In this document: piece by piece, positions 1,761 to 34,816 of the stretch | How positions within the stretch are numbered: position 1 is the first letter of the stretch | Layout: every line of letters begins with the position of its first letter | Sequence record: NC_061449.1 | Reading direction: 5' to 3' (one strand) | DNA: 64,000 bases | Made by a program: the position numbers and the translations under genes | Notes under the pieces: model-generated | The model's database searches: none | Told to the model about the DNA's origin: nothing | Seen by the model: the letters and a program-made list of their open reading frames with translations, nothing else

Positions 1761-2556
1761 GCGTTACGAAGGTCCGTACGGACTCGTCGAGTCCGACAAC
1801 ATGGTTCCTCGCTGGACGTACCCTGTTAAGCATGGACAGATACGCCGAGTAGAAGCGTGGGAACTTGATACAATGCCAAACACCACTATGCGTGTGCGTA
1901 TGGTGAATGACATTCATGCAATCCACAGTACACCTGTAGAGGAACACGATGACGACTCACTCGACCTCGACGAAGAAGCCGCAGCGATCTCAAAAACTGA
2001 GTCCCGACTTCTTATCAAGCCTCGACTCAATGAAGTCCGTTCCCGTAAAAATAAAGACCACGTTGGTCCAGAAAACGTCTTCACAGTCCCAGCCGAAGTA
2101 ATCGACGGTACACTGGACAGTGTTGACGAACACGCGCAGACGTTCCGTGACTATCTGCTGCATCAGGTATTCAGCCCGATACTTGGGTTTGATATTGCAG
2201 CCGGTGAAGTAGAAGCGATCTCGAAAGACTGCCTCAAAACAGACCTAGAGATTGACAGTGAGCTTGTGCCTTATATTGAGCGCGTAGGGCTTGCTAACAT
2301 CATCGGTGTGATGCTGTCTAAGTCGCAGTCAGTGCCTGAGTCTGTGCGCAGTGATGTGCTGAAAGACTGGCTAATCAAATCGTTTGATGACGTGCGAGCA
2401 GAGCACAAAGCGAAGACAGGCAGTAATACGTTACGTGCCCAACTTCGTCGCTTGATGCACGGTAACGACGAGCTGGTTGCTAAAGGTGCTGGCATAGGTA
2501 CAACCCGCGGATTTACTGAATACAGGAAGAAGCAGAACGAGAATGGCCAAGCCTAA
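1753..2556 (+). CDS. hypothetical protein (position would fit terminase small subunit)
   Basis: 267-aa ORF overlapping the terminase large subunit start; function inferred from position only. Confidence 0.55.
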   Translation: MSKRYEGPYGLVESDNMVPRWTYPVKHGQIRRVEAWELDTMPNTTMRVRMVNDIHAIHSTPVEEHDDDSLDLDEEAAAISKTESRLLIKPRLNEVRSRKNKDHVGPENVFTVPAEVIDGTLDSVDEHAQTFRDYLLHQVFSPILGFDIAAGEVEAISKDCLKTDLEIDSELVPYIERVGLANIIGVMLSKSQSVPESVRSDVLKDWLIKSFDDVRAEHKAKTGSNTLRAQLRRLMHGNDELVAKGAGIGTTRGFTEYRKKQNENGQA

Positions 2557-5371
2557 AAAAGGCCCAGCATTCACGATACGTCCGAAACGAATAGCTGCAT
2601 TCGATGCGCTGCTTGGTGACGACGTTAAGGCGGATGCCGCATCCGATATGGATTTCTTATCGGAGAATAGTTCGAGTGGGATTAACTTTCTCGAAAAGGG
2701 CGAGGTTAACATTGTTGACCTCGTTGAAGGTGCTTTAGAACAACGCACACTTGTGCCGCGTGATTTGAAGTTTGATGACAGTTCGATGCCCCGCGCCAAG
2801 AACTTCCTTGAGTGGTGTACTAGTCCAGACTTCTTAAAAGCCGACCCGTATCTCGAACAGGCCATGATTGGTCTGCGCTTGTTTGGTGAGATCTGCGTTA
2901 AGTGCTCACCGAACTTGCAATGGATGTACACTGAAAACCATGAGCCACAAGAAACGACAGCCGCGATAGAGACACACTTACACCTACTGCATAACGGTGT
3001 GTGCCCTCATTGCGGCGCTCGTCGTTCTGAGATGATTCGCAGAAAAGAGATGAACTTCTACAACGAGCTGGCTGTGAACGCCGGACAGCGTTGTGTGATT
3101 GCTTCAACTCCTGTGTTGACCTCTCGTGGTATCATGCCTATCGGACACATGATGATTGGTCATGACAGTCCTGGATTCCATAAGCCGCAGCGTAACTTCA
3201 ATGCGCACAACGGCCGTGAGATCAAGAACGTCAGCCAAGTCTACGTGTCAGATGAAGCACCAACCAAAGTCGTCACGCTCGCTAATGGCATGTGGATTGA
3301 AGCAACTCATGAGCACCCTGTGCGCACTGAGCAAGGCTTTAAGAAAGTGTCTAAGCTGCGTGGCGGTGAGCGTATCGAAATCAAACTCGGTACGAACTCG
3401 TGGGGCAAGATACAGCGTCCAGTCTCTATCTATGATGCTGGTCTATCTACGCGAGAAGAAGCGCTGCGTTATATTGCTGAACGTAGTGTGCCTCTTGGCG
3501 AAAAGATGCAGTACGTTACCGAAGACCCAGACGCACTTCAAATGGTGTGGTCGATTCTAATCAACGCTGGCCACATGCCGCAGATCGTTCACGGTACGCG
3601 CATGTGGAGCTTGGTGTATGACTTGACTGAACAACCCGAGTGCCGTTCTGTTCACGTCGAGGTAATCTCCGTTGATGATGGTACGCCGCAGGTCACGTAT
3701 GACTTGCAGATGGAAGGACTGCCGCAGTTCGTTGCGTCCGGCCTTGTGCATCACAACAGCGGGAAGTCGGTTGTAGTAGCGATGATCTCGACCTATCTGA
3801 CGCACAGACTGCTTATGTCGCAGTCGCCTACCGGCATCTTGGGCATCGACAGCACAACCGTATTGCACGGTACGTTCGTTGCCCTGACACAGAAGCAAGC
3901 GTCTGATACACTCTGGACTCCGTACTTCAACTACATCATGGGTAGTCCGTGGTTCCAAGCATATCATGATCTGATTCGCAAACACGAACGCCGTTACGGC
4001 ATCGAGGTGATGAAGATTCGTGATACGTTCGTTCTGTACGGACACAGGAACTTCGTTATCTACCCTGCCGGGCCTGATGGTCGTATTCTTCGTGGTCGAA
4101 CCCGTGTACTTGCGGTAATCGACGAAGTGGCGTATTTCGATAACGACGCCCAATCCAAGAAGATCAAAGTCAGTGCTGGTGCTGTGTACGGTGCACTTGA
4201 CCGTTCACTTGCAACTGTTCGTTCTGCCGAGATGCGGCAAGTCGAATCTGGTTATGATGAAGCATTCACGGGATATTTCTGTAACATCAGTAGTCCAGTT
4301 CACGCCCGTGATAAGATTAACGAATTGCTTCGTATGTCAGTAGGCTCTGAGAAGCTGCTGGGTATTCATGCTCCTACATGGAAGATGAACCCGACAATGC
4401 CTCGCACCTCTGAGTTCTTAGTCGAAGCGTTTCGTCGTGACCCGGTAGGTGCAGCCCGAGATTACGGAGCAGAAGCACCGTTGTCAGCTAACCCATTCAT
4501 CACGCAGCCTACGTTTATCTCAGATGCTATACGTGAGAAAGGTCGTTCGATGTGTACTTATACCCACCACATCATTCGACACAAAGACGGTGAACGCCAG
4601 CGCTATGGTAGTCTCGTCAAAGCGGCAACGACAACCAAAGCGTCGATACTTGCAATTGACGCAGGCTTCTCGAACAACAGCTTCGCACTCGTTACAGGCT
4701 CACGCGATGAAGCCGGTATTATCAGTGTCGATTGTCTGGTAGAGATCGTACCGAAGCCTGGCATCCCTCTGAACTACACCCTCATATTTGACGAGCTATT
4801 GATTCCGCTATGTCGTGCGCGTAACGTCCGCGTAATGCTTGCTGACCAGTGGCAGTCACTCAAGTTGTTGCAGGATGCAAAACTGAAAGTGGATTCCATT
4901 GAGGAGTCCGACCAGTACAGCTTGAAGTATCAGGATATGTGGACTGTTAAGACGATGTTCGAATCGCAGCCTAGTCGTATCAGTCTGCCTCGAATGACTC
5001 ACGCGAAAACTATCGCTGACACGTTGAAATACGACGGCGATGAATACCCTCAGTGCTTCGAGAACAAACCAACAGAGCACTTGATCATGCAGTTGCAGAC
5101 TGTGCAAGATACAGGCCGCAGCGTAATCAAGAACACAGGGGCAACCGATGACTTGTGGCGAGCAATGGCACTCATGGTCTACGGATTTGAGTGTGGTGAG
5201 TACGACGAGTATCTGACGAAAGCGCCAGAAGTCTCAGTCAACCGTGACCCGAATCGCTTGGGTCGCGTAGCGCATAGACTCAACTCAGGCTCTGCTGGTA
5301 GTTCACGACAGGCGCTCACTGGTGGTCGAGTTCTTGGTTCTGCTCGCACTCGAATGATTGGCCGTAAATAA
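2543..5371 (+). CDS. terL: terminase large subunit, intein-containing
   Basis: After removing the intein, Walker A reads NAGQR-SGKS; Walker B VIDEVAYF; nuclease motif LAIDAGFSNNSF; C-terminal DDLWRA; CxxC pairs in the N-terminal part. Confidence 0.85.
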   Translation: MAKPKKGPAFTIRPKRIAAFDALLGDDVKADAASDMDFLSENSSSGINFLEKGEVNIVDLVEGALEQRTLVPRDLKFDDSSMPRAKNFLEWCTSPDFLKADPYLEQAMIGLRLFGEICVKCSPNLQWMYTENHEPQETTAAIETHLHLLHNGVCPHCGARRSEMIRRKEMNFYNELAVNAGQRCVIASTPVLTSRGIMPIGHMMIGHDSPGFHKPQRNFNAHNGREIKNVSQVYVSDEAPTKVVTLANGMWIEATHEHPVRTEQGFKKVSKLRGGERIEIKLGTNSWGKIQRPVSIYDAGLSTREEALRYIAERSVPLGEKMQYVTEDPDALQMVWSILINAGHMPQIVHGTRMWSLVYDLTEQPECRSVHVEVISVDDGTPQVTYDLQMEGLPQFVASGLVHHNSGKSVVVAMISTYLTHRLLMSQSPTGILGIDSTTVLHGTFVALTQKQASDTLWTPYFNYIMGSPWFQAYHDLIRKHERRYGIEVMKIRDTFVLYGHRNFVIYPAGPDGRILRGRTRVLAVIDEVAYFDNDAQSKKIKVSAGAVYGALDRSLATVRSAEMRQVESGYDEAFTGYFCNISSPVHARDKINELLRMSVGSEKLLGIHAPTWKMNPTMPRTSEFLVEAFRRDPVGAARDYGAEAPLSANPFITQPTFISDAIREKGRSMCTYTHHIIRHKDGERQRYGSLVKAATTTKASILAIDAGFSNNSFALVTGSRDEAGIISVDCLVEIVPKPGIPLNYTLIFDELLIPLCRARNVRVMLADQWQSLKLLQDAKLKVDSIEESDQYSLKYQDMWTVKTMFESQPSRISLPRMTHAKTIADTLKYDGDEYPQCFENKPTEHLIMQLQTVQDTGRSVIKNTGATDDLWRAMALMVYGFECGEYDEYLTKAPEVSVNRDPNRLGRVAHRLNSGSAGSSRQALTGGRVLGSARTRMIGRK
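3092..3757 (+). mobile_element. intein (222 aa, mini or degenerate endonuclease) in the terminase Walker A motif
   Basis: Starts CVIASTPVLT (block A), block B ATHEHPV, ends GLVHHN followed by Ser +1. Confidence 0.9.
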
Positions 5372-9989: not shown

Positions 9990-10532
9990 ATGACGGAAAA
10001 GATTACGCAGTTGGAGAAATGGTTTGATGCAGCGAAAGTCGCATTCAAGATGGGGACAGTCAACCCTGATGGTGATGCTGCGTTGCTGTTGGCAATCCAT
10101 AAACGTCTGGTGAAAGAAGCCGAAGATTCAGGTGACGAAGATACTGTGACCGCAGCTCGGGTAGATCTGGAGGAATTTCTTGCAGACCTGCGCAAAGAGC
10201 TTCGCATGTACGACCTGATCTGTCGTCGCTTCAACACTGACCTGTACCCGAACATCAAAGTCGGTGATGACGTCAAAATCTATATCGCACTCATGGCACA
10301 AACGCCGGGTAGTGCTGTAATGGCAATGACGTACCTGTATCTCGCTCGCTGCTACACGCTGCAAGACATGATTCTGAACTTTCTCCCGAACGGCTTCCCT
10401 GCTAACGATGCTCTTGGCCTTACGTGGAGCATTCAGAAAGGGAACAGTGATTCGTTTACCGGAAATCTGGTGGACGATATTGAAACTGTAAATAGCCTGT
10501 ACAATAAGATGTATAGCTCTGGAGATAAGTAA
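9990..10532 (+). CDS. hypothetical protein
   Basis: 180-aa ORF with GAGG RBS. Confidence 0.65.
   Translation: MTEKITQLEKWFDAAKVAFKMGTVNPDGDAALLLAIHKRLVKEAEDSGDEDTVTAARVDLEEFLADLRKELRMYDLICRRFNTDLYPNIKVGDDVKIYIALMAQTPGSAVMAMTYLYLARCYTLQDMILNFLPNGFPANDALGLTWSIQKGNSDSFTGNLVDDIETVNSLYNKMYSSGDK
10486..10494 (+). promoter_or_regulatory. CTGTAAATA motif
   Basis: Exact copy 37 nt upstream of ORF 10532. Confidence 0.55.
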
Positions 10533-11125
10533 TGGATTTGTCTGCTATCGGTTACGCCCCGAAGCAGTTTCGAGTAATTCCCGTCGAGAAGGGCAATCTC
10601 GTTACTGACTTCATTCAAGGTAAGTTTCGCGTTATCGGCGTTGAGTGCAACGCTCGCGGTGCTTACGGTAGTCCTATTCAAAAGAGTATTGCACGTCGCT
10701 TCCCGGAAGTTGTGCGCAAGGTCGAATCAATCGACTACGAACACGAACTGACAATCGGTAAGACGCACATGATCCGTGTCGGTACTCAATATCGCCGCAA
10801 TATGTTTGTTGCTAACATGCACATTGCTCGCGGTTTTGGTCTGGGTCTCAATGGATCTTCTGCTGGAGCCCACAAGCCCATCAATCGTTTCAGTGAGAAG
10901 TTCCTCACGCGGGCGTTTGAAGACTTGTTGGAGCAGTGCGATAAAGAGAATGTTGCACTTGACCGACAGATCGCTATTCAGCGTTTCTATGGCGGACTCG
11001 GCGGGGTTTCGTGGGAAGAAGTATGTGTGGTGCTCGACGCTATCTGCGAAAAGTATCAGTTCAACATGTACGCTTATCTCCCTCGTAACTACAACACTAA
11101 CTTTGTGCGGGGCGTTGCGCAATAA
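10532..11125 (+). CDS. macrodomain-like protein (Poa1p / phage type)
   Basis: KGNLVTDF…IGVECNARGAYGSPIQKSIARRFPE…YGGLGGVSWEEV, matching the macrodomain pattern GD/N-L…CN…G…IA…FP…GxGGxxW. Confidence 0.7.
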   Translation: MDLSAIGYAPKQFRVIPVEKGNLVTDFIQGKFRVIGVECNARGAYGSPIQKSIARRFPEVVRKVESIDYEHELTIGKTHMIRVGTQYRRNMFVANMHIARGFGLGLNGSSAGAHKPINRFSEKFLTRAFEDLLEQCDKENVALDRQIAIQRFYGGLGGVSWEEVCVVLDAICEKYQFNMYAYLPRNYNTNFVRGVAQ

Positions 11126-11140
11126 CTCTGGGGTGTATTG

Positions 11141-11482
11141 ATGAATACAATACGCGGATTTGATTGGCTCTTTTACGGAGATGGAACCGATAGTGGCCAA
11201 CACTCAATTTTAAGTATCGTCGTTGAACAAGCGACGAAATCAATACAGGTAGAAGTGAAGCCAGGATGCGCCGTACCTGTAATTCAAGCGATTCAGGAAA
11301 ACGAAGTCCTGTACGCTCAGGCAGATAACGGTCTGTATCGAGTTCGCTATAGCTGTTCGTTCCGCAATCTTGATGCTAACGTTTTCCCGAAAGACAAAAC
11401 AACCTTCCGTTTGAAACTCATTGCATGTGATTTTCTTGCGGGCGTAACAACGCACGATAAGATGTCGGAGTACGTGCCATGA
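11141..11482 (+). CDS. hypothetical protein
   Basis: ORF in tight array. Confidence 0.55.
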   Translation: MNTIRGFDWLFYGDGTDSGQHSILSIVVEQATKSIQVEVKPGCAVPVIQAIQENEVLYAQADNGLYRVRYSCSFRNLDANVFPKDKTTFRLKLIACDFLAGVTTHDKMSEYVP

Positions 11483-12240
11483 TTACTGTACAGAAAATTG
11501 AAGCCCGTTTAAAGAGACTGGACTATACTCGGCCCTCACCTAGTCGTGAGATGCTTGAGGGACTTATGAAAGATGGACGCACTCGCATTCTAAGCAAATC
11601 AGCTTCGAGTGACTTGTGCAAAGACTCGTTGGAATACTTCGAGTTCTGTCTTTCTCAGGTCGGCTCTTTCTGTACTGCTTCGTATAATGCTGTAGAGATT
11701 GGTCTTTCTCTCAACATTCAACCGATCTACATAGCTGCTGCAATTAATCTTTACGGCAGCGACTGGCAGTTCCGTTTCCTTGAGCTTAAACGCTTTGGTC
11801 AGTTAGCTAGGGGTGACTACTCTGTGTGGAAATCGGCTGGGACATGGTTCGGTTTGGGTGAGTGTCGTCGTCGTTTGGTACGCGCTGGTACAACATCTGA
11901 GATCTCAACCGGCCAGTCTATCCTGCGTATGGCAGTACGCAAAGGTGAGATGGACAAGATACGTCAGATTGCAGAAACGCATCCACATCGCATGATGTCC
12001 ATTTTGGATAGAAAATGCGAGCCTTTGTATACTGACCCACGTATCGTTGCGTCAAAGAAAGCGCGTGAGAAAGCAAAAGCTGATGCCGCCGCTGCTGGCA
12101 AAAAGTTGGCGGAACCTCGCGCGTACAATGATCTAGCTGCTGTGTTCAACGGTCCTATTACACCGCCAGATAAGACGCGTGGCTTTAGTGATTCCTCGGA
12201 AACACGAGGCACTGTTAGCGGTCGTCGTTTTCGTGTTTAA
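11479..12240 (+). CDS. hypothetical protein
   Basis: 253-aa coupled ORF. Confidence 0.65.
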   Translation: MITVQKIEARLKRLDYTRPSPSREMLEGLMKDGRTRILSKSASSDLCKDSLEYFEFCLSQVGSFCTASYNAVEIGLSLNIQPIYIAAAINLYGSDWQFRFLELKRFGQLARGDYSVWKSAGTWFGLGECRRRLVRAGTTSEISTGQSILRMAVRKGEMDKIRQIAETHPHRMMSILDRKCEPLYTDPRIVASKKAREKAKADAAAAGKKLAEPRAYNDLAAVFNGPITPPDKTRGFSDSSETRGTVSGRRFRV

Positions 12241-12250
12241 GGAAAAAATA

Positions 12251-12634
12251 ATGGATAAGAAGTTAATCAGTACCCTCGTAAACAGTCTAAGTTCAGAGCC
12301 GCGTGGTCTTGCTGGAAAGTATGCAGACAAATCTGTTGGTCAGATCGCCAAAGAAGAAATTGGCATCTCGTTTATCGTAAATAACGCATTTGCCATGGAG
12401 CATCTTCTCTGGATGCCTGACCTTGAAGACAAATGGTTTGTACCTACAGAATCTCTCAACGATCTGTCTGCTGGTCTTATCGGTCATGTGGGTGCCGTGC
12501 CTGTCTATAGTGACTGGTATTATGGCCGCCCTGAGGACCGTATGCGTCCTTGCGATAAAATCCCGCGCGTCGGTGTTGTTCAAAATAACACGAACGAAAT
12601 TTTCCTGCTTACTGTCGAGCAATTTCGTCAGTAA
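12251..12634 (+). CDS. hypothetical protein
   Basis: ATG after AAGGA RBS, in frame with track ORF 12179..12634. Confidence 0.6.
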   Translation: MDKKLISTLVNSLSSEPRGLAGKYADKSVGQIAKEEIGISFIVNNAFAMEHLLWMPDLEDKWFVPTESLNDLSAGLIGHVGAVPVYSDWYYGRPEDRMRPCDKIPRVGVVQNNTNEIFLLTVEQFRQ

Positions 12635-12685
12635 AGGCTGCGAACGGTAATTTCGAGCGTCAAAACAAATAACGGAAATCTAATC

Positions 12686-13456
12686 ATGAGCAACGTTGAT
12701 AAAACAATGCCAGAAGGTCGCTGGGAGTTCAATGAGCCAGTTGCTGCTGTGTTCGATAACATGCTGCAAAACTCAATTCCTTCCTATGATCGTATGCGCG
12801 ATCTGACCTATCGTCTCGGTCGCCAGTTCGTAACTCCTGGTTCAGCTATCGTTGACCTGGGCGCTTCACTCGGCCGTGCTATCGAACCGTTCTGTGCTGA
12901 GTTCGGCGAGTACATGTATCTTCACGCTGCTGATCGTCCTGAGCCTGATCGTGAAGTTGGCAACATGTATTGCTGCTACGAGGTCGCGCCAGCAATGCTG
13001 GAGCGTCTGCGTGAAAACCCTGTGCTGAAAACGGCTAAAGCGAAAATCAGTAGCGAGTCGCTGGTGGAAGTAGACACGTTCCGCTTCGGCGAGCAGGTAG
13101 AGTGTTCGCTCATTCTGTCTGTGCTTACTCTCCAGTTCACGCCGATTGAGCACCGTCAGCACATTTTGGAGAAAGTGTACGACTCGTTGCAGAAAGGCGG
13201 TGCGTTCATTCTCGTTGAGAAAGTGTTGGGTGACGACAACTTCCTCGACCGTCTGCTTGTTGATACTTACTACGGCATGAAGGGCGACAACGGTTATTCG
13301 CAAGAGAGCATTGCGACGAAACGCAAAGCGCTTGAAGGTGTACTCGTACCTGTCAAGGCCGCGTGGAACGAAGAACTGCTGCGCAAAGCAGGCTTCGACC
13401 GCGTTGAATGTTTCTACCGCGATCTTAACTTCGCCGGATGGATCGCAATTAAGTAA
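12686..13456 (+). CDS. cmoA: carboxy-S-adenosyl-L-methionine synthase (CmoA family)
   Basis: WEFNEPVAAVFDNMLQNSIPSY, DLGASLG, TLQF, LVEK, NGYSQESIATKRKALEGV parallel E. coli CmoA ([51 protein letters not shown]), including the Arg199 equivalent. Confidence 0.9.
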   Translation: MSNVDKTMPEGRWEFNEPVAAVFDNMLQNSIPSYDRMRDLTYRLGRQFVTPGSAIVDLGASLGRAIEPFCAEFGEYMYLHAADRPEPDREVGNMYCCYEVAPAMLERLRENPVLKTAKAKISSESLVEVDTFRFGEQVECSLILSVLTLQFTPIEHRQHILEKVYDSLQKGGAFILVEKVLGDDNFLDRLLVDTYYGMKGDNGYSQESIATKRKALEGVLVPVKAAWNEELLRKAGFDRVECFYRDLNFAGWIAIK

Positions 13457-13463
13457 GGGAAGT

Positions 13464-14729
13464 ATGATGAAAGTAAACGGGCGTATCTTAGCAATCGTGC
13501 CACACAAGACCCTCCAGGACAGGACTAAGTCTGGTGTTGGTGCGTACATTGATGGACTTGAAGCGTACGGCTTCTGCGACTTCATCACTGACGGTGAAAA
13601 CAGCTCTGTCACCAAGAGCCTGTGGTTTAACTACGGTGATACCACTCTAAGCGACGGTTACAAAGTTGGTCACATCCAGAGTGCTCTGCTTGAAGCGCTC
13701 GACCGCATTCCGTATCGTGCAATTATTTGTAGCACCTACGAAGCTGTCGAAGCTGCTGTCGGTCTTGGTCTGCCTAAGATTATGCCCGTTTACTATCGTT
13801 CACACAACAGCTTCCTGTTAACGCAGGACCTGAATGGGCTTGGTGCTGAGAAGATGCACCGTGCGTTGCTGCAAGCGCCTGTGACTGGTCTGCGCATCTT
13901 AGCGAACTGTGATTCAACTGCGCGTGTGCTGTCTGAGATTTATAAAACTGAGGCTGCTGTCGCGTATAACGCATTCAGTGTATCTGACTACAATCCACCT
14001 GCGAAACGTAAACCTTCGCTGTTGATTATCTGTCGCTACGAAAAGGTTAAGCGTCCTGCGTTTGCTGCGCGTATCGCTGCTGCGTCTGGCTTACCTGTTC
14101 GTGTTATGACCGGCTCTGATCGTCAGGTCAAAAGCTGGGAGAAAGAGCTTGCTGATGCAGGCGTAAAAGATTACCAAGTCGTCAGTGGTTTGTCTGGTGA
14201 CGAGAAGATGGCGTTCATCGGACAATGTACCGTAGCGCTGTCATGTGCCGAAGTAGAGTCATTCGCTAACGGTGTGCGTGAGACTATCCCGTACTGCCCG
14301 ACGTTCGTTGTGCAAACTTCTAAGTACGATTGGGCGCGAGACTATACGCGCTTCTGCTCTGAGAACAAGCACATCCACATTCGCACTGTTGATCGTGTGA
14401 CTGCGAAAGAGGTGGAAGAACTGGGCAATGAGATTGCTTACTGGGCCCGCACCAAGTATCTGACTAAAGCTGAACGCGTTACGCTGCTGACCGAATGGTG
14501 CAAGCGCGTGGACAAAGGCTGGGCCGACTTCATGAAGAATGCAGTCGTGCCTGATGACGGCAAGCCGATGAAGACCGACCTGTCGAAAGAACTCGAAGAA
14601 AAAGGCGTAGTAGATTGGTCGAAGACGCAGACGTTAATGCGTACTGTAAAAGCTATACACAAGTGTCATGCTCGTATGGGCTTGACGTTCGATGGCACCA
14701 AAATCAAAACGAAAGGGAGGAAGAAATGA
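13464..14729 (+). CDS. GT-B fold glycosyltransferase (GT4-like)
   Basis: N-terminal SGVGAY, LLIICRYEKVKRP (R…K donor-binding pattern), ESFANGVRE (E-x7-E motif). Confidence 0.75.
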   Translation: MMKVNGRILAIVPHKTLQDRTKSGVGAYIDGLEAYGFCDFITDGENSSVTKSLWFNYGDTTLSDGYKVGHIQSALLEALDRIPYRAIICSTYEAVEAAVGLGLPKIMPVYYRSHNSFLLTQDLNGLGAEKMHRALLQAPVTGLRILANCDSTARVLSEIYKTEAAVAYNAFSVSDYNPPAKRKPSLLIICRYEKVKRPAFAARIAAASGLPVRVMTGSDRQVKSWEKELADAGVKDYQVVSGLSGDEKMAFIGQCTVALSCAEVESFANGVRETIPYCPTFVVQTSKYDWARDYTRFCSENKHIHIRTVDRVTAKEVEELGNEIAYWARTKYLTKAERVTLLTEWCKRVDKGWADFMKNAVVPDDGKPMKTDLSKELEEKGVVDWSKTQTLMRTVKAIHKCHARMGLTFDGTKIKTKGRKK

Positions 14730-15757
14730 GCGTGATTGGTGATATCTATAATATTCCGCAACCGTACGCGATGTTCTGTGGTAACGCCACGACGAAAGCA
14801 ATGGCGAAGATCACTGCCGGTATGGTTGAGTGGGCGTCAGAGAAAGTCTGCTGTGTAGTTGACGATGCTAATAACCTGTTCCCTGAAATGCCTCACGTTG
14901 AAATTCGTGACCTCAATAAGACCGATGCAGAAACTCTGGTCATCGGGTTTGCGCCTTTTGGCGGTCAGATTAACGAAGACATTGATCGCGCTATCTGCGA
15001 AGCATTGAAGCGTGGCCTGAACGTTGCTGCTGCTCTGCACGTCAAGCTGTCTGACAATCCTAAATACTTCGCTCTAGCTCGTGAGCATGGGGTATCGCTG
15101 TATGACTTCCGCCACCACCCTGAGCAATATCCTCTGGGCACTGGTCTTCCTCGTGCCGGTGTTCGTGTTCTTACTGTTGGTACTGACTGTTCGTGCGGTA
15201 AGAAATTTACTGCACTCGCACTGACTAAGAAGCTGACCGAGCTGAAACAGAAAGCTGTGTTCTGTGCTACCGGTCAAACTGGTTTTCTGATTAGCGGTCG
15301 CGGCATCAACAACGACACTGTGGTCGCTGACTTCCTTGCTGGTGCTGCTGAGTGGCTGTCACCTGCTGACGAAGAAGCTATCTATCTGATTGAAGGTCAA
15401 GGTGCGTTACGCCATCCGGCGTACACTGGTGGCAGCATGAGTCTGATTGCTGGCTCCCAGCCCGACGCTATCGTTGTCTGCCACACTGTTGGCCGTAACT
15501 TCATGATGAACACCGAGCGCGAGATCAACATCGTTGACGAGATCTCTGCTAATCTCGCTGCTGCCGCAATGCACGACTGGTACCCGAAAGTCGTCGGTAT
15601 CAGTATCAACTTCTGCGAAGTGAAGATGACGAAGAAAGAGCGCGAAGTATATTTGCGTAATCTTTCTAAAAGCAGTGGTTACGTGGCGTTTGACCCACAA
15701 GCTGGCGGTGAAGAGTTTGACCGTGTTGCGCACTACATCACGACGCTCAAACGCTGA
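14726..15757 (+). CDS. DUF1611 family protein (DgcN-like, P-loop)
   Basis: VLTVGTDCSCGKKFTALAL, ATGQTGFLI, DFLAGAAEWL, IEGQGALRHPAY, GSQPDAIVVCH; ATGA overlap with the GT gene. Confidence 0.85.
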   Translation: MSVIGDIYNIPQPYAMFCGNATTKAMAKITAGMVEWASEKVCCVVDDANNLFPEMPHVEIRDLNKTDAETLVIGFAPFGGQINEDIDRAICEALKRGLNVAAALHVKLSDNPKYFALAREHGVSLYDFRHHPEQYPLGTGLPRAGVRVLTVGTDCSCGKKFTALALTKKLTELKQKAVFCATGQTGFLISGRGINNDTVVADFLAGAAEWLSPADEEAIYLIEGQGALRHPAYTGGSMSLIAGSQPDAIVVCHTVGRNFMMNTEREINIVDEISANLAAAAMHDWYPKVVGISINFCEVKMTKKEREVYLRNLSKSSGYVAFDPQAGGEEFDRVAHYITTLKR

Positions 15758-16701
15758 TGAAAGTCTTAATCGACAATGCCGCGTTAGCGAGTAATGCGGC
15801 CTATTTAAAATCACTCGCTCCGTCCATGATTCCGGTTGTGAAAGGTAATTTCTACGGTCATGGTTTAGATTGTGTGAGAGCATTCTCCTTAGGGTTTGAG
15901 GTGCTCGCTGTCCATAGCGACCGCGAAGCACTTGCGCTGCGTGAACTCGAACTCGACCACACGCTGTTAATTCTCGGCGGTGTATACGGTCGCATGTGGA
16001 ATACAGTGCCTGTTCTGAACGCAAAGCAAGTCGGCAAGTATGAAGGACGATACGCTGTGTTTGCTGATTGGGGCTGTCGTCGCATCAACGTCAAGCCCGA
16101 AGATCTCACGCACCCACCCGCGTTGATTCTTGTTCACTCGGATGACTATCGTGTGCCTGTGTCTGAGTACGACGCTAATGAGATCGCACAACGCTACAAC
16201 GTGCCACTGTCTATGCTGTCTGTAGGCTCAAGCATGAACGTGCTCGATCAATATTCACCGAAGTTGAAACCTCGTGTCGGTATGGCAATTACCGGATATA
16301 GTAGCGATGAAACTGTGAACGGTAATTTGTGTGTAGCGAAGACAGTGCTTGCTCGTACCTGCGATAAGCTGGATGCGGGTCGAGTATTCGGTTACGGTGC
16401 GTTGGTGCCTAACAGCGCAGACAAGTTCCTGTACTCGATTGATGTTGGTTATTACGATAACCTGTATCAGTCCAACAAGAACACACCTGTGTATTGTCCT
16501 GATGCACCACATGCACAGGTCACGCTTCTCACAGGCGTTGCCAACGCAATCAGCATGAACCATGCCTTCGTATTGTCAGATATCGAGCTACCGTTTGACT
16601 CTGAGATTGAAATACTCGGACCTAACGTTCGCGCAGACTATCTGGCTAAACTCCACGGAACAACAACTGCGAATATTTTAAGGCTGGGTAATCATGGCTA
16701 A
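15757..16701 (+). CDS. alr: PLP-dependent amino-acid racemase (alanine racemase family)
   Basis: PVVKGNFYGHG (PLP Lys), EALALR, FGYGA (catalytic Tyr), GYYDN, ISMNH. Confidence 0.85.
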   Translation: MKVLIDNAALASNAAYLKSLAPSMIPVVKGNFYGHGLDCVRAFSLGFEVLAVHSDREALALRELELDHTLLILGGVYGRMWNTVPVLNAKQVGKYEGRYAVFADWGCRRINVKPEDLTHPPALILVHSDDYRVPVSEYDANEIAQRYNVPLSMLSVGSSMNVLDQYSPKLKPRVGMAITGYSSDETVNGNLCVAKTVLARTCDKLDAGRVFGYGALVPNSADKFLYSIDVGYYDNLYQSNKNTPVYCPDAPHAQVTLLTGVANAISMNHAFVLSDIELPFDSEIEILGPNVRADYLAKLHGTTTANILRLGNHG

Positions 16702-17563
16702 ACACGTTTTGCGCAAGCTGTTTGAACAGCACGTTAAAGCAGAGGTCAAAGATGACAAGGTGGCAGTGCTGCTGTCCAGTGGTCTTGACGGACTTGTTAG
16801 CGGGCTTGCTGCCCATGACTTAGGAAAGAAGGTACACGCCTTTACTTTCCAAATGGGCGACAACGAAAGTTTCGACAGCAAACACGCACGTAAAGTCGCA
16901 GAGAAGATGGGATGGGAGTTCACGCTTGTGAAAGTCCCTACGTCTGACAGCGCTATCGTACAGGGTTGGAAAGCGCTTCACGCGAAGTACCGTTGCGTTA
17001 AGAAGCGCGACTATGAGTGCGCATATCCTATGGTGTATTGCTACAAGGCAATCAAGGATGCAGGTTACAAGTATGTACTGAGCGGCCTTGTCGCTGATGC
17101 CTACTTCTGTTTTGCGCGTAACACTCACATCGCTAAAATCAGCGGACCGCACAGCGTACTCGAAAAGTTCGACGAGTACCGCAAAGCATATTGGGCACCG
17201 TGGTTCAAGAGCGGTAAGAAGTCTCTCGGCGTTGATGGATATAACCCTAGCGGTATGCTGCAACACGAAATGCTGTGCGACTCTTTCGGTCTGACGCACG
17301 TTAACCCGTGGCTGATAAAGAAAGTCCATGACTACTTCATTGGTCGTTCATGGCAAGAACTAAATCAACCCAAGCAGAAAATGCCAATAACAGAAGCATG
17401 GGCTGATCACATCGCGGTTGTAGGCCATCGCCCGCATCGCGGTTATCAAACAGAAGCTGGAGTACCTGCGTACTTCGAACGCTTACTGGATAATCCTGAG
17501 ATCAACTTCAACGGTCGCAAGCGTGTTATGGACCTTGCCCGTGATTGGTCAACGAGGACTTAA
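16694..17563 (+). CDS. asparagine-synthetase-like ATP-dependent amide ligase (synthetase domain only)
   Basis: VAVLLSSGLDG PP-loop, HAFTF…DSKHARKVAEKMG, YVLSGLVADAYF (cf. VLSGEGADELF); no N-terminal glutaminase domain. Confidence 0.8.
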   Translation: MAKHVLRKLFEQHVKAEVKDDKVAVLLSSGLDGLVSGLAAHDLGKKVHAFTFQMGDNESFDSKHARKVAEKMGWEFTLVKVPTSDSAIVQGWKALHAKYRCVKKRDYECAYPMVYCYKAIKDAGYKYVLSGLVADAYFCFARNTHIAKISGPHSVLEKFDEYRKAYWAPWFKSGKKSLGVDGYNPSGMLQHEMLCDSFGLTHVNPWLIKKVHDYFIGRSWQELNQPKQKMPITEAWADHIAVVGHRPHRGYQTEAGVPAYFERLLDNPEINFNGRKRVMDLARDWSTRT

Positions 17564-17564
17564 C

Positions 17565-18185
17565 ATGTTAGTACACATCATTGACGGAAACGTGGGCGGT
17601 AACTATGTGTTCCACAAGCTGCAAGAGTCTGGTATCAACGCGCGTGTCCATGCGCCTAGTGACCCACGCCGCCGTGCAGTAGCAGCAACCTACCCTTCGC
17701 TGTCTATGGGATTTACTCCCGAAGAGATCGAGAAGCATATCGGTAATGTGCTTGGCACCTATCGAGGCCTGTTCTTGATTAGCAGTTATGTAGGTTCGCT
17801 GGTGGCTCGTAGCATGATTGACCAGTGTGGTCAGAGTCATAACATCATTTATTGCGATGATCTACAGTGTGGGTCTATGCCTGTTGTTGCTTCCTCAATT
17901 TCTGTAAATGTATATCAGAAGCAACGACGACTCGGACGTATTGCAGGTAGACTCAAACACTTCGACCTCGACCACGAATTTATTATCGCTGATAAATCAG
18001 TGCGATTTGCGTCAGGTTCAGAGTTTGATGAACACGGCGCGCGTGAAGAACTGGACGATACGCCTAAGTTTCTATCGAGTCCGTCAATGATTGTTGCTGC
18101 ACACAAACTCGGTGTGAAGCGCAGCATGTATCACAACTATGCAGGTCTGGTGCGAGAGTTCCTTGAAAAGCGCCAGCAGCAATAA
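17565..18185 (+). CDS. hypothetical protein, possibly degenerate Asp/Glu racemase (MurI) fold
   Basis: N-terminus HIIDGNVGGNYV resembles MurI IFDSGVGGLSV; the canonical catalytic CNT is not present (ISSYVGS instead). Confidence 0.55.
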   Translation: MLVHIIDGNVGGNYVFHKLQESGINARVHAPSDPRRRAVAATYPSLSMGFTPEEIEKHIGNVLGTYRGLFLISSYVGSLVARSMIDQCGQSHNIIYCDDLQCGSMPVVASSISVNVYQKQRRLGRIAGRLKHFDLDHEFIIADKSVRFASGSEFDEHGAREELDDTPKFLSSPSMIVAAHKLGVKRSMYHNYAGLVREFLEKRQQQ

Positions 18186-18197
18186 CGCGAGGGCACG

Positions 18198-18461
18198 ATG
18201 ATTAATCGCTTTCAGTTAAAACGAGTTCCAGTGATTGAAGCCTGTCAGTGGAACGGTGAGAACGTTGAGGAGATGAATGAGTTTCTCAACGGCAGCGGTT
18301 ACGTTGTAGGGCGTTACGTTCAAATCGGTATGACGGACCAGTACGGCAAGCCTACTCTTGCGAACGTGGCAGTTGGCAACTATGCAATAAAACACGAAGA
18401 TGGTAAGTTCGATGCAATCACAGCATCCGAGCTGCACACCAACTACGTGTTGGCAGATTGA
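18198..18461 (+). CDS. small conserved phage-type protein
   Basis: VIEACQWNGENVEEM…GNYAIKHEDGKF pattern common in phage small proteins. Confidence 0.65.
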   Translation: MINRFQLKRVPVIEACQWNGENVEEMNEFLNGSGYVVGRYVQIGMTDQYGKPTLANVAVGNYAIKHEDGKFDAITASELHTNYVLAD

Positions 18462-18468
18462 GGGCACG

Positions 18469-18924
18469 ATGAACCTGTTTTCTATTTTAAAGCAGCAAGT
18501 GAAGAAAGCGCTATCAACCGAAGCGAACCACGAGCCTGAGATTCGCTCTCTGTTCGACTGGCGTTACTCTGTGGAAATCAAAGGCCAGATGTATATCGTC
18601 GGTAAGACTGGCGCTAACACCTGCTTCTATATCGAGCCAGGTACTTCTGAGCCTATCGCTTGTTACCCTGATGCGTTACTCGAAAAGATCGACGAGTGGG
18701 GAGCGAGCAAGTACGTGTCGTATTCGATCTTCTTCAAACGCTTCGATAGCCCTGTTGCTGAGAACATCAAAACTCTCGAAAAGGCAATGAGCGGCAAACC
18801 GAAGACCTTTAAGAAAGGCTACTTCATCTGTGGTGTGACACCGAAAGGCAAGCGTGAGAAACTCTATCGCTTGCAGCAAGGTCTGTCAGGTATGCAGTGG
18901 GTAGCTGTGGAGAAACAAGCATGA
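18469..18924 (+). CDS. hypothetical protein
   Basis: ATG after GAGGG RBS. Confidence 0.6.
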   Translation: MNLFSILKQQVKKALSTEANHEPEIRSLFDWRYSVEIKGQMYIVGKTGANTCFYIEPGTSEPIACYPDALLEKIDEWGASKYVSYSIFFKRFDSPVAENIKTLEKAMSGKPKTFKKGYFICGVTPKGKREKLYRLQQGLSGMQWVAVEKQA

Positions 18925-19130
18925 GTAAGCGCATTCAATTCCTTTTGTCCTGTAGCGCGTTTGTCTCAGGCTTGCTTCTGACGCTGGTGATCTTCGCTCT
19001 GATTGTGTTCAATGTTGTTATGGACATATCAAAGGAAGTAACCACACCTCTGCTGATCGTTCTCGTTGTTTGTTTTATTAACAACATGTCAACGGTGTTC
19101 TTGATGCGGACCAACAACTCTAAATCGTAA
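18921..19130 (+). CDS. small membrane protein (2 TM)
   Basis: Two hydrophobic stretches, ATGA overlap. Confidence 0.6.
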   Translation: MSKRIQFLLSCSAFVSGLLLTLVIFALIVFNVVMDISKEVTTPLLIVLVVCFINNMSTVFLMRTNNSKS

Positions 19131-20984: not shown

Positions 20985-21827
20985 ATGACCGTAATCAGTC
21001 CAATCCGTTATCAGGGCAATAAGCGAAGCCTTATCCCTCTTATTCTTGAGCACACACCAAGCGTACAAGACTGTCCGCGTATGGTCGATGTGTTTGGTGG
21101 TAGTGCCACTGTGTGCGCTAACATGCCTCAGAAGTTTCGTGTGTACAACGAGCTTAGTCCTCAGGTGTTTGAGATCGTTAAGATGCTGGTTGAGCAAGAC
21201 CCGAAGAAAACTCTCGGTCAAGTCAAGCGTCTGGTAAAACACTGGTGCCTGACAAACAGCAACGAAGCGAACTATGATGCGTTTCGAACTGTCGTCCAGA
21301 AGAAGCGTACACCGATATTGCATTACGTTGCACACAGACATGCGCACTCGAATATGCTGCGCTTCAACCAGCAGGGTGTGTACAACGTAGGCTTTGGTGA
21401 TCGTGGTCTGATTGGAAAGTTCGACGAGCTGGAGCACGAACTCACTACTTTCCACAGTCACATGCAGGGTGTCCACCTGACGAACATGAAGTACGGTAAG
21501 TTACTGAGTCGCTTAGGCCACCAACTGAACTACAACACGTTCTGTTACTTCGACCCGCCGTATCTGGCGAGCGGTGCAATGCAGTACGGCAAGTGGACTG
21601 AAACGAATGAGCGTAACCTGCTTGCTACTCTGGAGCAACTCAATCGCTTAGGCGTACCGTGGATGTTGAGCAACGTAACCGAACACCGACACTTCTCAAA
21701 CGATTTGTTGAAGCGCTGGTTAAAGAAACACGCAACGACCGTGTTGTACCCGAACAAAAGCTATGCGATGAACAATGGCCAGAGTGGCTCGCATGGTACT
21801 GTTGAAATTCTGGCAATGAACTACTGA
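20985..21827 (+). CDS. dam: DNA adenine methyltransferase (Dam / D12 class)
   Basis: SPIRYQGNKRSL, DVFGGSATV, YFDPPY; GATC specificity not established. Confidence 0.88.
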   Translation: MTVISPIRYQGNKRSLIPLILEHTPSVQDCPRMVDVFGGSATVCANMPQKFRVYNELSPQVFEIVKMLVEQDPKKTLGQVKRLVKHWCLTNSNEANYDAFRTVVQKKRTPILHYVAHRHAHSNMLRFNQQGVYNVGFGDRGLIGKFDELEHELTTFHSHMQGVHLTNMKYGKLLSRLGHQLNYNTFCYFDPPYLASGAMQYGKWTETNERNLLATLEQLNRLGVPWMLSNVTEHRHFSNDLLKRWLKKHATTVLYPNKSYAMNNGQSGSHGTVEILAMNY

Positions 21828-27848: not shown

Positions 27849-28198
27849 TGCCTCCTGTAATTCGTTTCAACGAACAAACCTGCGAACTGCTGAAAAAGAC
27901 TTTCGGCATTGATTCACCTTTCATTGTCGTGCGTCGTGAGCGCATCATCGAAGACGGTAAGCCTTTCGGTGAGCGTGTCTATTTGAACAACGGCATTCAC
28001 ACCGTGACTGTGCCTAACGTACAGGGTCTCGACTTCGGCGATAAGCTGTATCTCGCCGAAGATATGGAAGTGTATGAGTGGCACCCGCACTTCGGCCTTC
28101 ATCCTACCATTCATCATTCTGTAAGCAATAACCAGAAGACTGCGCTCTCGTTCGGCCTTCATCCTATCATCTACCATAAAGACAGTCGGAACTCTTAA
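27848..28198 (+). CDS. hypothetical protein with duplicated C-terminal FGLHP motif
   Basis: 16-bp direct repeat TTCGGCCTTCATCCTA at 28091 and 28151. Confidence 0.6.
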   Translation: MPPVIRFNEQTCELLKKTFGIDSPFIVVRRERIIEDGKPFGERVYLNNGIHTVTVPNVQGLDFGDKLYLAEDMEVYEWHPHFGLHPTIHHSVSNNQKTALSFGLHPIIYHKDSRNS

Positions 28199-29298
28199 TG
28201 AACAAGCAACCTCTTGATCTGCGCGATCCAAATCAATACGAAGTTTACTCTCTGCACTGCGTAGACGAACAGTACATCAACCTAGGCAACGCTATTCTGG
28301 CGTGTGGTACTGACGAATCAGATCTCGGTCGCACCGAAGATACGTGGCGTACTCTGATTGGCGTCGGCTTCCAGTTGTCTAATACACTGATCGCTTTCCC
28401 TGCGCTGCTGTCTGCACGTAAGAACTGGTTCGCTGCTGTGGATGAAACCTGCTGGTTCATGCGCGGCGACACGAACATCAGCACTCTCCAGTCTAAAATC
28501 TGGAACGAATGGGCAGATGAAGAAGGCGAATGCGGTCCTATCTACGGTGAGATGTGGCGGCGCTGGCCTGACCTGAAAGCGTACTACGACTACACGCAAC
28601 CACAGCACTCTGAGCCTACTGCTGAGATGATTCGTGTGCGTAACGAAATCCTGCGTATGCGCGAAGACGGGTATATCGAAACGCAACTGACTGACGGGCG
28701 CATTCTGTTCGAAGGTCAGATTGACCAGTTCGCTAACGCACTGCATCAGGTTATGGCGCGTTCTCGCTCTCGTCGTATTCGCGTTCAGGCATTCAACCCT
28801 GCGTATCAGAACATGCAGGGTCTGCCTCCGTGTCACACCGAATTTGAGTTCAATGTGACTCAGCCTACTCAGTACGAGATCGCACAGATGGAAGCGCGCG
28901 GTATGGCTCCGTCTGACGCATCGTTGCATATCGTTGTGACCATGCGTTCCAATGATGTGCTGCTCGGGCGCCCGTTCAACATCATGGGCTACAGCGCGAT
29001 GCACCAACTGATTGCCAAGTGGGCTGGGTTGAACGTAGGTAGCTTTACGCTGAACACGACGAACACGCATCTGTATACGCATCACTTCGAAGCGTTCGAA
29101 CAGCAGAAGCAACAATGGGCGGCGCTCAGTGACCTGATGAAGAAAACTGGTCAGCCTATTCAATACCCGCTGCTCGAAATCAGCGACGACATTCTCGGCC
29201 TAACGCCAGAAGAGTTGCTGGACAACGCAACGGTCGAGTGGTTCCAACTTCTCGACTACTCCCCTGCACCAGCAGTCAAAGGGCGTGTTACCAAATGA
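28198..29298 (+). CDS. thyA: thymidylate synthase
   Basis: IWNEWADE…GPIYGEMWRRW, RR, LPPCH catalytic Cys, RSNDVLLGRPFNI, HLY. Confidence 0.92.
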   Translation: MNKQPLDLRDPNQYEVYSLHCVDEQYINLGNAILACGTDESDLGRTEDTWRTLIGVGFQLSNTLIAFPALLSARKNWFAAVDETCWFMRGDTNISTLQSKIWNEWADEEGECGPIYGEMWRRWPDLKAYYDYTQPQHSEPTAEMIRVRNEILRMREDGYIETQLTDGRILFEGQIDQFANALHQVMARSRSRRIRVQAFNPAYQNMQGLPPCHTEFEFNVTQPTQYEIAQMEARGMAPSDASLHIVVTMRSNDVLLGRPFNIMGYSAMHQLIAKWAGLNVGSFTLNTTNTHLYTHHFEAFEQQKQQWAALSDLMKKTGQPIQYPLLEISDDILGLTPEELLDNATVEWFQLLDYSPAPAVKGRVTK

Positions 29299-30835: not shown

Positions 30836-30885
30836 GGCGCTGTCTCTTGTTCAGCATAATTTGATTATCTAACAGGAGACTTGCC

Positions 30886-31221
30886 ATGAAATATGATCCG
30901 AAGAAAGACTTTCACCCTTTTCAATATCTGGGTGCACCTAAAGTTCCGCACACAGGCTTCTTAGGCAGCACAGTGAACTTAGTCGAGAACGACGTAAACA
31001 TCGGTCAAGACGAATGCACGTTTGAGTTTACTGTCGCCCAGATGAATGAGATGGACAGAGGTACTGTTACGTTCCGGGCGAAAGACTCGGGCGGAGGTAT
31101 CGACATTAAGAAATGCTCGGTCTCTGGTCTGAAAATGGTAATTAAGCTGGACCGTCGTGTTGTGCAGTTCGGCAAAGTTCAGGTCGAATGGCAAACGACA
31201 CCCCGACACTATTACTACTAA
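30886..31221 (+). CDS. hypothetical protein
   Basis: AGGAG RBS, 111 aa. Confidence 0.6.
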   Translation: MKYDPKKDFHPFQYLGAPKVPHTGFLGSTVNLVENDVNIGQDECTFEFTVAQMNEMDRGTVTFRAKDSGGGIDIKKCSVSGLKMVIKLDRRVVQFGKVQVEWQTTPRHYYY

Positions 31222-31263
31222 TCTGTAAAGACAGAGAAAGAGCAACCGAAAAGAGATACGACA

Positions 31264-31974: not shown

Positions 31975-31975
31975 T

Positions 31976-34105: not shown

Positions 34106-34113
34106 GGGCGTCT

Positions 34114-34218
34114 ATGTTCTACGTAGGCTTAGGGTTAGGTGTCGTGATTGGAATCGTTCTCACGATATTCTGTCTGTGGTTTTTCTTCCTGAAGGACTTC
34201 GCGGTATTTCGACCGTGA
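34114..34218 (+). CDS. 34-aa single-TM protein
   Basis: MFYVGLGLGVVIGIVLTIFCLWFFFLKDFAVFRP; below the track cut-off. Confidence 0.45.
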   Translation: MFYVGLGLGVVIGIVLTIFCLWFFFLKDFAVFRP

Positions 34219-34251
34219 CCAAAGAGGACAAGGAAGTCCGGGAGATTTAAA

Positions 34252-34815: not shown

Positions 34816-34816
34816 C

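Follow-up and report, generated by a model that had tools for sequence, protein, structure and literature searches.

The stretch of DNA analysed here (hereafter, the window) comprises bases 1-64000, 64 kb in all, of the Erwinia amylovora jumbo phage pEa_SNUABM_17, a member of the genus Alexandravirus with a genome of 263,916 bp (MZ443777 / NC_061449; 100% identity). It harbors gp017 (12686-13456), a homolog of CmoA and predicted carboxy-S-adenosylmethionine (Cx-SAM) synthase. Two further genes of the window are homologs of enzymes that act downstream of a phage CmoA in a known DNA modification system: gp021 (16694-17563), an asparagine-synthetase-like ligase of the CmoY type, and gp049 (31976-34105), a cytosine-C5 (carboxy)methyltransferase homolog of the CmoX type that is interrupted by an intein. 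All genes of the window described below lie on the plus strand.

The gp017 reading frame starts with ATG, encodes 256 residues, and is labelled "tRNA methyltransferase" in RefSeq. In a phmmer comparison, it matches E. coli CmoA (PDB 4GEK) over residues 11-256 with an E-value of 5.8e-30. The protein is contained in PHROG 4752 (E 3.4e-80) and is 30% identical (E 1e-28) to the biochemically assayed CmoA of the Synechococcus phage S-B43. Among family models, the CmoA model TIGR00740 gives by far the strongest match (E 2.2e-42), whereas no other methyltransferase family does better than E 2e-3 and general Pfam methyltransferase models match weakly. The preliminary description of the window, which had read this gene as a phage-encoded CmoA and proposed a profile comparison as a check, is upheld as to the family but not at the equivalog level: the TIGR00740 score of 145.4 bits is below the curated cut-off of 193.3 bits, and NF011995 yields 108.2 bits (E 4e-31) against a cut-off of 285. 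By its sequence, gp017 is a divergent phage branch of CmoA that stops short of an equivalog-level match.

The S-adenosylmethionine (SAM)-binding motif I is found in gp017 as DLGASLG (residues 57-63), and the acidic residue that follows is the Glu of YEV, which aligns with the Asp of the E. coli CmoA motif IDN. Residues 212-217 read KRKALE. Within this segment, R213 (codon at 13322-13324) is the equivalent of R199 in E. coli CmoA; the 4GEK chain has 261 residues and the native protein 247, so that an offset of 14 places chain residue 213 at native R199. This arginine is said, after work of Kim et al. in 2013, to contact the Cx-SAM carboxylate. The catalytic arginine reported in the preliminary description is thus retained. 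However, the same alignment column holds Glu in the active S-B43 CmoA and Lys in the homologs from the metagenomic loci L028 and L032, and R213 therefore fits a CmoA assignment without proving it by itself.

The short insertion that had also been noted in gp017 is real and comprises 12 residues, AADRPEPDREVG (residues 81-92, encoded at 12926-12961), located between motif I and the acidic residue aligned with the IDN Asp. It is shared by the phages AD1, Y3, and SNUABM_7, occurs in a variant form in Yoloswag, and is a gap in the CmoA proteins of E. coli, S-B43, PaBG, Afa-NA1, and two environmental homologs. The insertion is, on this alignment, lineage-specific. An AlphaFold2 (AF2) model of gp017, built from an alignment of five sequences, has a mean predicted local distance difference test score (pLDDT) of 58, with values below 50 for the insertion and the R213 region.

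These features bear on one alternative, in which gp017 only looks like CmoA and is in fact a plain SAM-dependent methyltransferase. Such a reading would accommodate the scores below the TIGR00740 and NF011995 cut-offs and the lineage-specific insertion, and the AF2 model is too poor for a check of the pocket. It is nonetheless extremely improbable, given the end-to-end similarity to CmoA, the gulf between the CmoA model and the other family models, the conservation of the KR/LEGV region in the alignment, and a genomic context that fits a Cx-SAM system.

The canonical partner of CmoA is missing from the phage. The TIGR00452 model for CmoB has 0 matches in the window and in the complete 263,916-bp genome, while control genomes respond, and ARAGORN detects no tRNA genes in either. 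The absence of a CmoB partner, first described for the window alone, therefore extends to the whole genome, as does the absence of tRNA genes. Neither DAHP (3-deoxy-D-arabino-heptulosonate 7-phosphate) synthase nor chorismate mutase was found in the pEa_SNUABM_17 genome.

A phage CmoA without CmoB was also the starting point of Yang et al. (Nat Commun, December 2025), who characterized the system of Synechococcus phage S-B43 (PMC12783734). The S-B43 CmoA makes Cx-SAM, and CmoX, a homolog of C5-methyltransferases, uses only Cx-SAM to form 5-carboxymethylcytosine (5cxmC) in DNA (PMC12783734). CmoY, an asparagine-synthetase-like ligase, then couples glycine to 5cxmC (PMC12783734). Two features mark a protein as CmoX: the SPPC motif, and an arginine (Arg350) that touches the carboxymethyl group at a site where true methylases have Asn; the R350N variant is inactive (PMC12783734). 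A gene with a ParB domain is a frequent neighbor in CmoX contigs (PMC12783734). The preliminary description overlooked both this publication, with the same reasoning for S-B43, and an acceptor enzyme encoded within the same window.

That enzyme is the 709-residue precursor gp049. Its best match in the PDB is the S-B43 CmoX (SpCmoX, 8YF3; E 1.8e-52), compared with 1e-14 for M.HaeIII, and it contains a PF00145 domain (E 2.3e-36). The SPPC motif is present as GSPPC at residues 93-97, and removal of the intein restores GSPPCKGFS. R674, in the segment ERLGRVCVP, aligns with R350 of SpCmoX (ERVGRMVPP in 8YF3), a position occupied by Asn in true methylases. gp049 thus most likely supplies the missing partner of gp017, as a DNA cytosine carboxymethyltransferase (CmoX) encoded in the same window.

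The gp049 precursor is divided into three segments. The N-extein (residues 1-96; 31976-32263) ends in GSPP and is 56% identical to SpCmoX and 52% identical to PaBG CmoX. The intein (residues 97-453; 32264-33334; 357 residues) starts with CFTEDT, contains TPEH, ends in VVVHN, and is delimited by comparison with uninterrupted homologs. The C-extein (residues 454-709; 33335-34105) begins with C454, which is at once the +1 residue of the intein and the catalytic cysteine of motif IV (PPC-KGFS). The hallmarks of a class 1 intein are all found in gp049: C97, the block B motif TPEH (T157-H160), H452-N453, and C454. The Pfam Intein_splicing model scores 34.7 bits, just below its cut-off of 35.8, and no recognisable homing-endonuclease domain is found in the intein. 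Both C97 and C454 align to C98 of SpCmoX and C100 of PaBG CmoX, and the junction without the intein reads GSPPCKGFSTAGV, identical to the uninterrupted protein of L028. On this basis, the catalytic cysteine is assigned as the +1 nucleophile of the intein.

A full-length insert at the same site is present in 51 of 51 records of the clade, and the CmoX proteins of PaBG, Flavobacterium phages, S-CRM01, and L028 lack it. In a comparison of pEa_SNUABM_17, Y3, Yoloswag, and fHe-Yen9-02, identity is 74-83% for the exteins, 35-66% for the intein, and 26-58% for the middle of the intein, with the splicing residues invariant in all four. The pattern fits an old, fixed intein that is predicted to splice still, and the persistence of its splicing residues amid such drift argues that CmoX has been kept functional.

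Directly upstream of gp049 and paired with it is gp048 (31264-31974), a ParB-like protein assigned to PHROG 620 (E 3.8e-32). It is 42% identical to the ParB-like protein encoded upstream of cmoX in PaBG and 45% identical to an L028 protein.

The third enzyme of the S-B43 scheme has its counterpart in gp021, here designated CmoY type I, an asparagine-synthetase-like, AMP-forming amide ligase by homology. It aligns with S-B43 CmoY over its full length with 34% identity (E 2e-53). PF00733 matches it with an E-value of 8.1e-15, covering the synthetase domain only; there is no glutaminase domain. cmoA and cmoY are 3.2 kb apart in one packed block with three genes between them, and cmoX is found 18.5 kb downstream of cmoA. 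The gaps from gp017 to gp022 are 10, -4, -1, -8, and 1 nt, an operon-like packing. Scans for promoters and terminators over 11000-19000 and 30500-35000 returned counts equal to those in shuffled sequence and are uninformative.

The first of the three intervening genes, gp018 (13467-14729), is predicted to encode a GT-B (GT4-like) glycosyltransferase with a tailoring role. It has no Pfam, PHROG, or NCBIfam match; it does match GT4 clusters (atlas feature score 0.98), and its AF2 model (pLDDT 79; predicted template modelling score, pTM, 0.81) adopts a GT-B fold. A Foldseek search with this model retrieves GT-B enzymes, led by the phage HY126 glycosyltransferase (9IQZ, E 5e-9); all GT-B enzymes score about equally, so this match does not demonstrate a DNA substrate.

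The second gene, gp019 (14726-15757), encodes a DUF1611 protein similar to DgcN and is predicted to perform acyl transfer on a D-amino acid. It is matched by PF07755 (E 4.8e-49), PF17396 (E 1.9e-18), and PDB entry 7XRJ (E 4.9e-58). DgcN is, by its NCBIfam name, a D-glutamate N-acetyltransferase, whose product is N-acetyl-D-glutamate. The DgcN model NF041892 covers 318 of its 326 profile positions in gp019 and scores 298 bits, below its cut-off of 480. The protein shares the DgcN architecture, though not necessarily the DgcN substrate.

The third gene, gp020 (15757-16701), encodes a pyridoxal phosphate (PLP) enzyme of the alanine racemase (Alr) family (PF01168, E 1e-9; TIGR00492, E 1.4e-9), with scores far below the family cut-offs. 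Its VKGNFYGHG segment aligns with the PLP-lysine motif VKSNAYGHG of Alr. In VGYYDN, the GY pair aligns with that of IGYGDG in Alr and presumably includes the second catalytic tyrosine.

Downstream of cmoY, gp022 (17565-18185) is a conserved neighbor in the clade and has no family match. Its membership of the module was considered and rejected, as the PaBG gene at the corresponding position is dissimilar and the metagenomic modules lack gp022.

The association among these genes is most evident in other genomes. In PaBG, ParB-like, cmoX, cmoA, a small open reading frame, and cmoY are contiguous. Environmental homologs of gp021 gave access to metagenomic contig loci (L028, L030, L032, L037, and L039). 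Two of them, L028 and L032, are divergent, with module proteins 24-61% identical to those of the window. L028 has the contiguous order ParB, cmoX, cmoA, glycosyltransferase, DUF1611, Alr-like, and cmoY on one strand, and L032 has cmoX, glycosyltransferase, DUF1611, Alr-like, cmoY, and cmoA in one block. L039 has cmoA, glycosyltransferase, DUF1611, Alr-like, and cmoY, directly followed by a DAHP synthase gene (L039:10876-11739; TIGR00034, 180.2 bits, above the cut-off of 173.2). DAHP synthase catalyzes the first step towards prephenate, the co-substrate of CmoA. The L039 gene looks like an auxiliary gene feeding the supply of prephenate, and its position beside the module lends independent support to a CmoA that consumes prephenate.

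Among phages, one and the same set of 51 records contains cmoA, cmoX, and cmoY; 48 of these are Erwinia phages, two Dickeya phages, and one a Yersinia phage. The related Dickeya phages JA11, JA29, and JA33, with portal proteins 70% identical, lack all three, which is also what Table 5 in the study by Day et al. (2018; PMC6143709) shows.

The distribution of the three genes bears directly on the role of the phage CmoA. One alternative is that it raises Cx-SAM for the CmoB of the host and thereby boosts the 5-carboxymethoxyuridine at position 34 (cmo5U34) of host tRNAs, as an auxiliary gene that tunes translation. In its favor, no other use of Cx-SAM is established in Enterobacterales, E. coli has cmoA next to cmoB, and both RefSeq and PHROG name gp017 a tRNA methyltransferase. 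Yet the phage carries neither tRNA genes nor cmoB, the host already has a CmoA, and cmoA tracks cmoX and cmoY in presence and absence and shares one block with them in PaBG, L028, and L032; enhancement of host tRNA modification is accordingly very unlikely.

A second alternative, raised by Yang et al., is that CmoA is mainly a SAM sink that blunts SAM-dependent host defences, with Cx-SAM an incidental product; the phage CmoA that they assayed was ten times faster than the E. coli enzyme (PMC12783734). A sink would not account for why CmoA strictly co-occurs, and is syntenic, with a transferase specific for Cx-SAM and with a carboxylate ligase, and the DAHP synthase by the L039 module argues for supply of the product. 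SAM depletion as the main function has very little probability, and would be at most an added benefit.

The preferred interpretation is that gp017 is a phage Cx-SAM synthase serving DNA and not tRNA, and this is held with good confidence. The different acceptor for Cx-SAM that had been suspected, one other than tRNA 5-hydroxyuridine (ho5U), is thus supported comparatively, by the CmoX and CmoY homologs in the window, by co-occurrence and synteny, and by the absence of cmoB and tRNA genes.

The three genes between cmoA and cmoY are more restricted in distribution. The phage database holds 34 records with DUF1611, 21 with the glycosyltransferase, and 12 with the racemase-like gene. This clade accounts for every record with DUF1611 or the racemase-like gene and for each glycosyltransferase homolog of full length; Xanthomonas and Synechococcus phages contribute three weak, partial glycosyltransferase matches. 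Wherever DUF1611 or the racemase-like gene occurs, it is located between cmoA and cmoY, as is the glycosyltransferase within the clade. In the metagenomic contigs, DUF1611 lies directly upstream of cmoY type I, or of an Alr-like gene followed by cmoY type I, in six of six arrangements (eight contig loci). Glycosyltransferase homologs are found inside the module in L028, L030, L032, and L039, and Alr-like homologs in the modules of L028, L032, L037, and L039. Retention of this neighborhood across such divergence is the main argument that the three extra enzymes tailor the same DNA adduct.

The same neighborhood could be read differently, such that the product of the block of cmoA, glycosyltransferase, DUF1611, Alr-like, and asparagine-synthetase-like genes is a small molecule or a modified protein or glycan (e.g., a D-amino-acid sugar, carboxymethylated and amidated, for virion "hairs"), with gp049 an ordinary DNA methylase. 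Cx-SAM is also used in natural-product pathways (e.g., TglE/F and MccS), glycosyltransferases, racemases, DgcN, and AsnS-like enzymes are typical of small-molecule chemistry, and the two loci are 13.7 kb apart in pEa_SNUABM_17. However, gp049 has the Cx-SAM arginine in place of the methylase Asn and is far nearer to SpCmoX than to any methylase, the blocks of L028 and L032 each include cmoX along with the glycosyltransferase, DUF1611, Alr-like, and cmoY genes, and gp021 is a full-length homolog of the DNA-acting S-B43 CmoY (SpCmoY). A small-molecule, protein, or glycan product is therefore quite improbable.

Of the metagenomic loci, L030 and L031 contain a GNAT acetyltransferase gene (L030:11192-12100; L031:11526-12434) one to two small genes downstream of cmoY. 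The contig is a 224-kb metagenomic jumbo phage with the block glycosyltransferase, DUF1611, and cmoY. Sequences matching window positions 12000-18000 were also detected in fifteen sequencing runs, mostly wastewater, manure, compost, and soil metagenomes, with 26-59% of the sampled 31-mers present. Close relatives of the block seem to be common in such samples. The runs are stored as assembled contigs, a form that carries no signal of base modification.

Within the clade, CmoA is 67-97% identical, and CmoY falls into three types with less than 37% identity between them. Type I is found in pEa_SNUABM_17, AD1, and SNUABM_7, always with DUF1611. Type II is found in Y3 and Yoloswag, with a 2-oxoglutarate (2OG)-Fe(II) oxygenase nearby, and type III in SNUABM_2, SNUABM_30, SNUABM_5, fHe-Yen9-02, and PaBG. 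Between pEa_SNUABM_17 and pEa_SNUABM_2, CmoA is 95% identical and CmoY 28%, which indicates that the ligase and tailoring genes have been exchanged as a unit. Such exchange predicts different final bases in sister phages. The oxygenase that accompanies type II CmoY in Y3 (L009:8954-9592) matches PF13640 (E 1.6e-15); that of Yoloswag (L010:8944-9585) is an oxygenase by annotation alone. The Y3 gene suggests a hydroxylated variant of the adduct.

Taken together, these features allow a pathway to be proposed. CmoA would convert SAM and host prephenate to Cx-SAM, from which gp049 would transfer a carboxymethyl group to C5 of cytosines in phage DNA to give 5cxmC. The transferase would be active only once the intein is spliced out and GSPP is joined to the catalytic cysteine. 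gp021 would then adenylate the carboxylate of 5cxmC and couple an amine to it. These first three steps, i.e., Cx-SAM synthesis, C5 carboxymethylation, and ATP-dependent amidation, are considered likely on the strength of homology to assayed enzymes; the activities assigned to CmoA, CmoX, and CmoY rest on analogy with the S-B43 proteins, to which these enzymes are 30-56% identical. The evidence itself consists of homology, signature residues, gene order, and co-distribution among phages.

In a fourth step, the DgcN-like DUF1611 protein, the Alr-like PLP enzyme, and the GT-B glycosyltransferase would tailor the product. The best guess for the adduct is a D-amino acid amide that is subsequently glycosylated; a D-amino acid is favored because a racemase-like gene and a DgcN-like protein are present. 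An N-(cytosin-5-yl-acetyl)-D-amino acid would be analogous in structure to N-acetyl-D-glutamate. For the glycosyltransferase to act, the adduct would have to offer a hydroxyl, such as that of serine. Biologically, the modification may shield phage DNA from host nucleases. This protective function, the choice of amine, the sequence of steps, and the roles of the three extra enzymes are conjectural.

The fuller proposal is accordingly offered as a possible but tentative one. It holds that a seven-gene module of this clade builds a larger, previously undescribed cytosine adduct on 5cxmC, that the adduct is a D-amino acid amide formed by the CmoY type I/DgcN-like pair with the racemase and then glycosylated, that the swapped cassette yields at least three chemistries, and that the transferase requires splicing at its catalytic cysteine.

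Several observations weigh against this proposal or its parts. gp017 is below the curated equivalog threshold of TIGR00740, the PP-loop of gp021 is the variant SSGLDG and not SGGxDS, and no ParB domain is matched in gp048 by Pfam at E<=0.01. The linkage of cmoX to cmoA rests on other genomes, given the distance of 18.5 kb between them here. Splicing of gp049 is predicted, and a precursor that does not splice would have no intact motif IV. As for the later steps, we know of no precedent for DgcN, racemase, or glycosyltransferase chemistry on DNA, and an amino acid linked through its alpha-amine would leave an N-acetyltransferase no obvious free amine. A complex prediction for CmoY and the DUF1611 protein returned no answer and is evidence neither way. 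The papers examined contain no chemical or restriction data on pEa_SNUABM_17 or its relatives. Finally, host CmoA sufficed for CmoX in E. coli (PMC12783734); with a CmoA present in the host, the phage copy could be a booster rather than a requirement.

Further observations concern genes outside the proposed module. The terminase large subunit gp004 (2543-5371) is unusually long at 942 residues, and residues 226-405 give a weak Pfam intein-splicing match (E 1e-4, below cut-off). Inteins have been described in the terminases of related phages in the PaBG paper, and gp004 may contain a second intein in the window. gp030 (20985-21827) encodes a D12-class N6-adenine DNA methyltransferase (PF02086, E 1.9e-23) that is conserved in relatives and probably gives the phage a second, independent DNA modification. 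gp044 (28198-29295; 366 residues) is a thymidylate-synthase homolog (PF00303, E 1.2e-54; TIGR03284, above cut-off) that matches in two pieces with approximately 50-100 extra residues between them. For gp013 (10532-11125), which has no Pfam match at E<=0.01, the AD1, Y3, and Yoloswag homologs carry annotations as O-acetyl-ADP-ribose deacetylase or Appr-1-p processing (macro domain) proteins. Outside the window, at genome positions 220814-222268 (L017:1141-2595), a 484-residue radical SAM protein matches generic models only. Day et al. report a radical SAM homolog in AD1 and Y3 and none in JA11, the same pattern as for cmoA, cmoX, and cmoY (PMC6143709).

The proposed pathway would place a DNA carboxymethylation system in biocontrol phages that are well studied, can be cultured, and infect a plant pathogen; in these, genetics and liquid chromatography coupled to mass spectrometry (LC-MS) are easy. 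It points to new chemistry on a carboxyl handle, with D-amino-acid, acyl-transfer, and sugar enzymes kept across 24-61% identity. An arms race with modification-dependent nucleases would be expected to produce what is seen here, a natural swapping of ligase and tailoring genes among phages that are otherwise nearly identical. For enzymatic DNA labelling, new amide ligases and a carboxymethyltransferase gated by an intein could also be of use.

The closest known system is that of S-B43, with which pEa_SNUABM_17 shares the same three enzyme families, the absence of CmoB, the SPPC motif and Cx-SAM arginine of CmoX, a CmoY without a glutaminase domain, and a nearby ParB-like gene. In contrast to S-B43, the enzymes here are 30-56% identical to their counterparts and are distributed over two loci, the intein is located at the catalytic cysteine of CmoX, the CmoY represents a separate type, invariably accompanied by a DUF1611/DgcN-like gene, and an Alr-like enzyme and a GT-B glycosyltransferase are added. 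With these extra enzymes, the final base is probably not 5-glycylcarboxymethylcytosine. Publication of the core in 2025, namely a phage CmoA that feeds a DNA cytosine carboxymethyltransferase, means that the bare finding is no longer new. What is new here is the split into two loci, the intein-gated CmoX, and the three conserved tailoring enzymes added to an S-B43-type system. PMC12783734 makes no mention of intein, DUF1611, racemase, or Erwinia, and neither does the available text of its supplements, one of which is truncated.

PaBG, a distant relative, encodes annotated ParB-like, CmoX, and CmoA homologs that are 42-52% identical to those of the window, together with a cmoY homolog, in genes 176-181, and its portal protein is 45% identical. 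It differs in that the block is contiguous and lacks DUF1611, Alr-like, and glycosyltransferase genes, CmoX has no intein, CmoY is of type III (29% identical), and tRNA genes are present. The PaBG tRNA cluster is approximately 5 kb upstream of its cmo block; pEa_SNUABM_17 has none. The CmoA/CmoB pathway to tRNA cmo5U34 in E. coli shares the CmoA fold and sequence family and the R199 equivalent. In pEa_SNUABM_17, however, there are no CmoB or tRNA genes, CmoA carries a 12-residue insertion and scores below the equivalog level, and the predicted acceptor is DNA.

As in the glucosylation of 5-hydroxymethylcytosine (5hmC) in T4, a reactive group would be installed on a pyrimidine and then decorated. 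Phages HY126 and RB69 contain arabinosyl-5-hydroxycytosine in their DNA (PMC13326640). The handle in T4, HY126, and RB69 is a hydroxyl group, whereas that proposed here is a carboxylate. gp019 resembles DgcN (NF041892; 7XRJ) in its full-length DUF1611 architecture, and the adjacent racemase-type gene suggests D-amino-acid chemistry; unlike DgcN, it scores below the 480-bit cut-off and is encoded within a phage DNA-modification block. Lastly, the gp049 intein has the Cys1, TxxH, terminal HN, and +1 Cys of the class 1 inteins found in phage replication and packaging genes and, like these, is inserted in the most conserved active-site motif of its host protein. In contrast to those inteins, the gp049 intein resides in a cytosine-C5 transferase, whose catalytic cysteine also serves as the +1 nucleophile.

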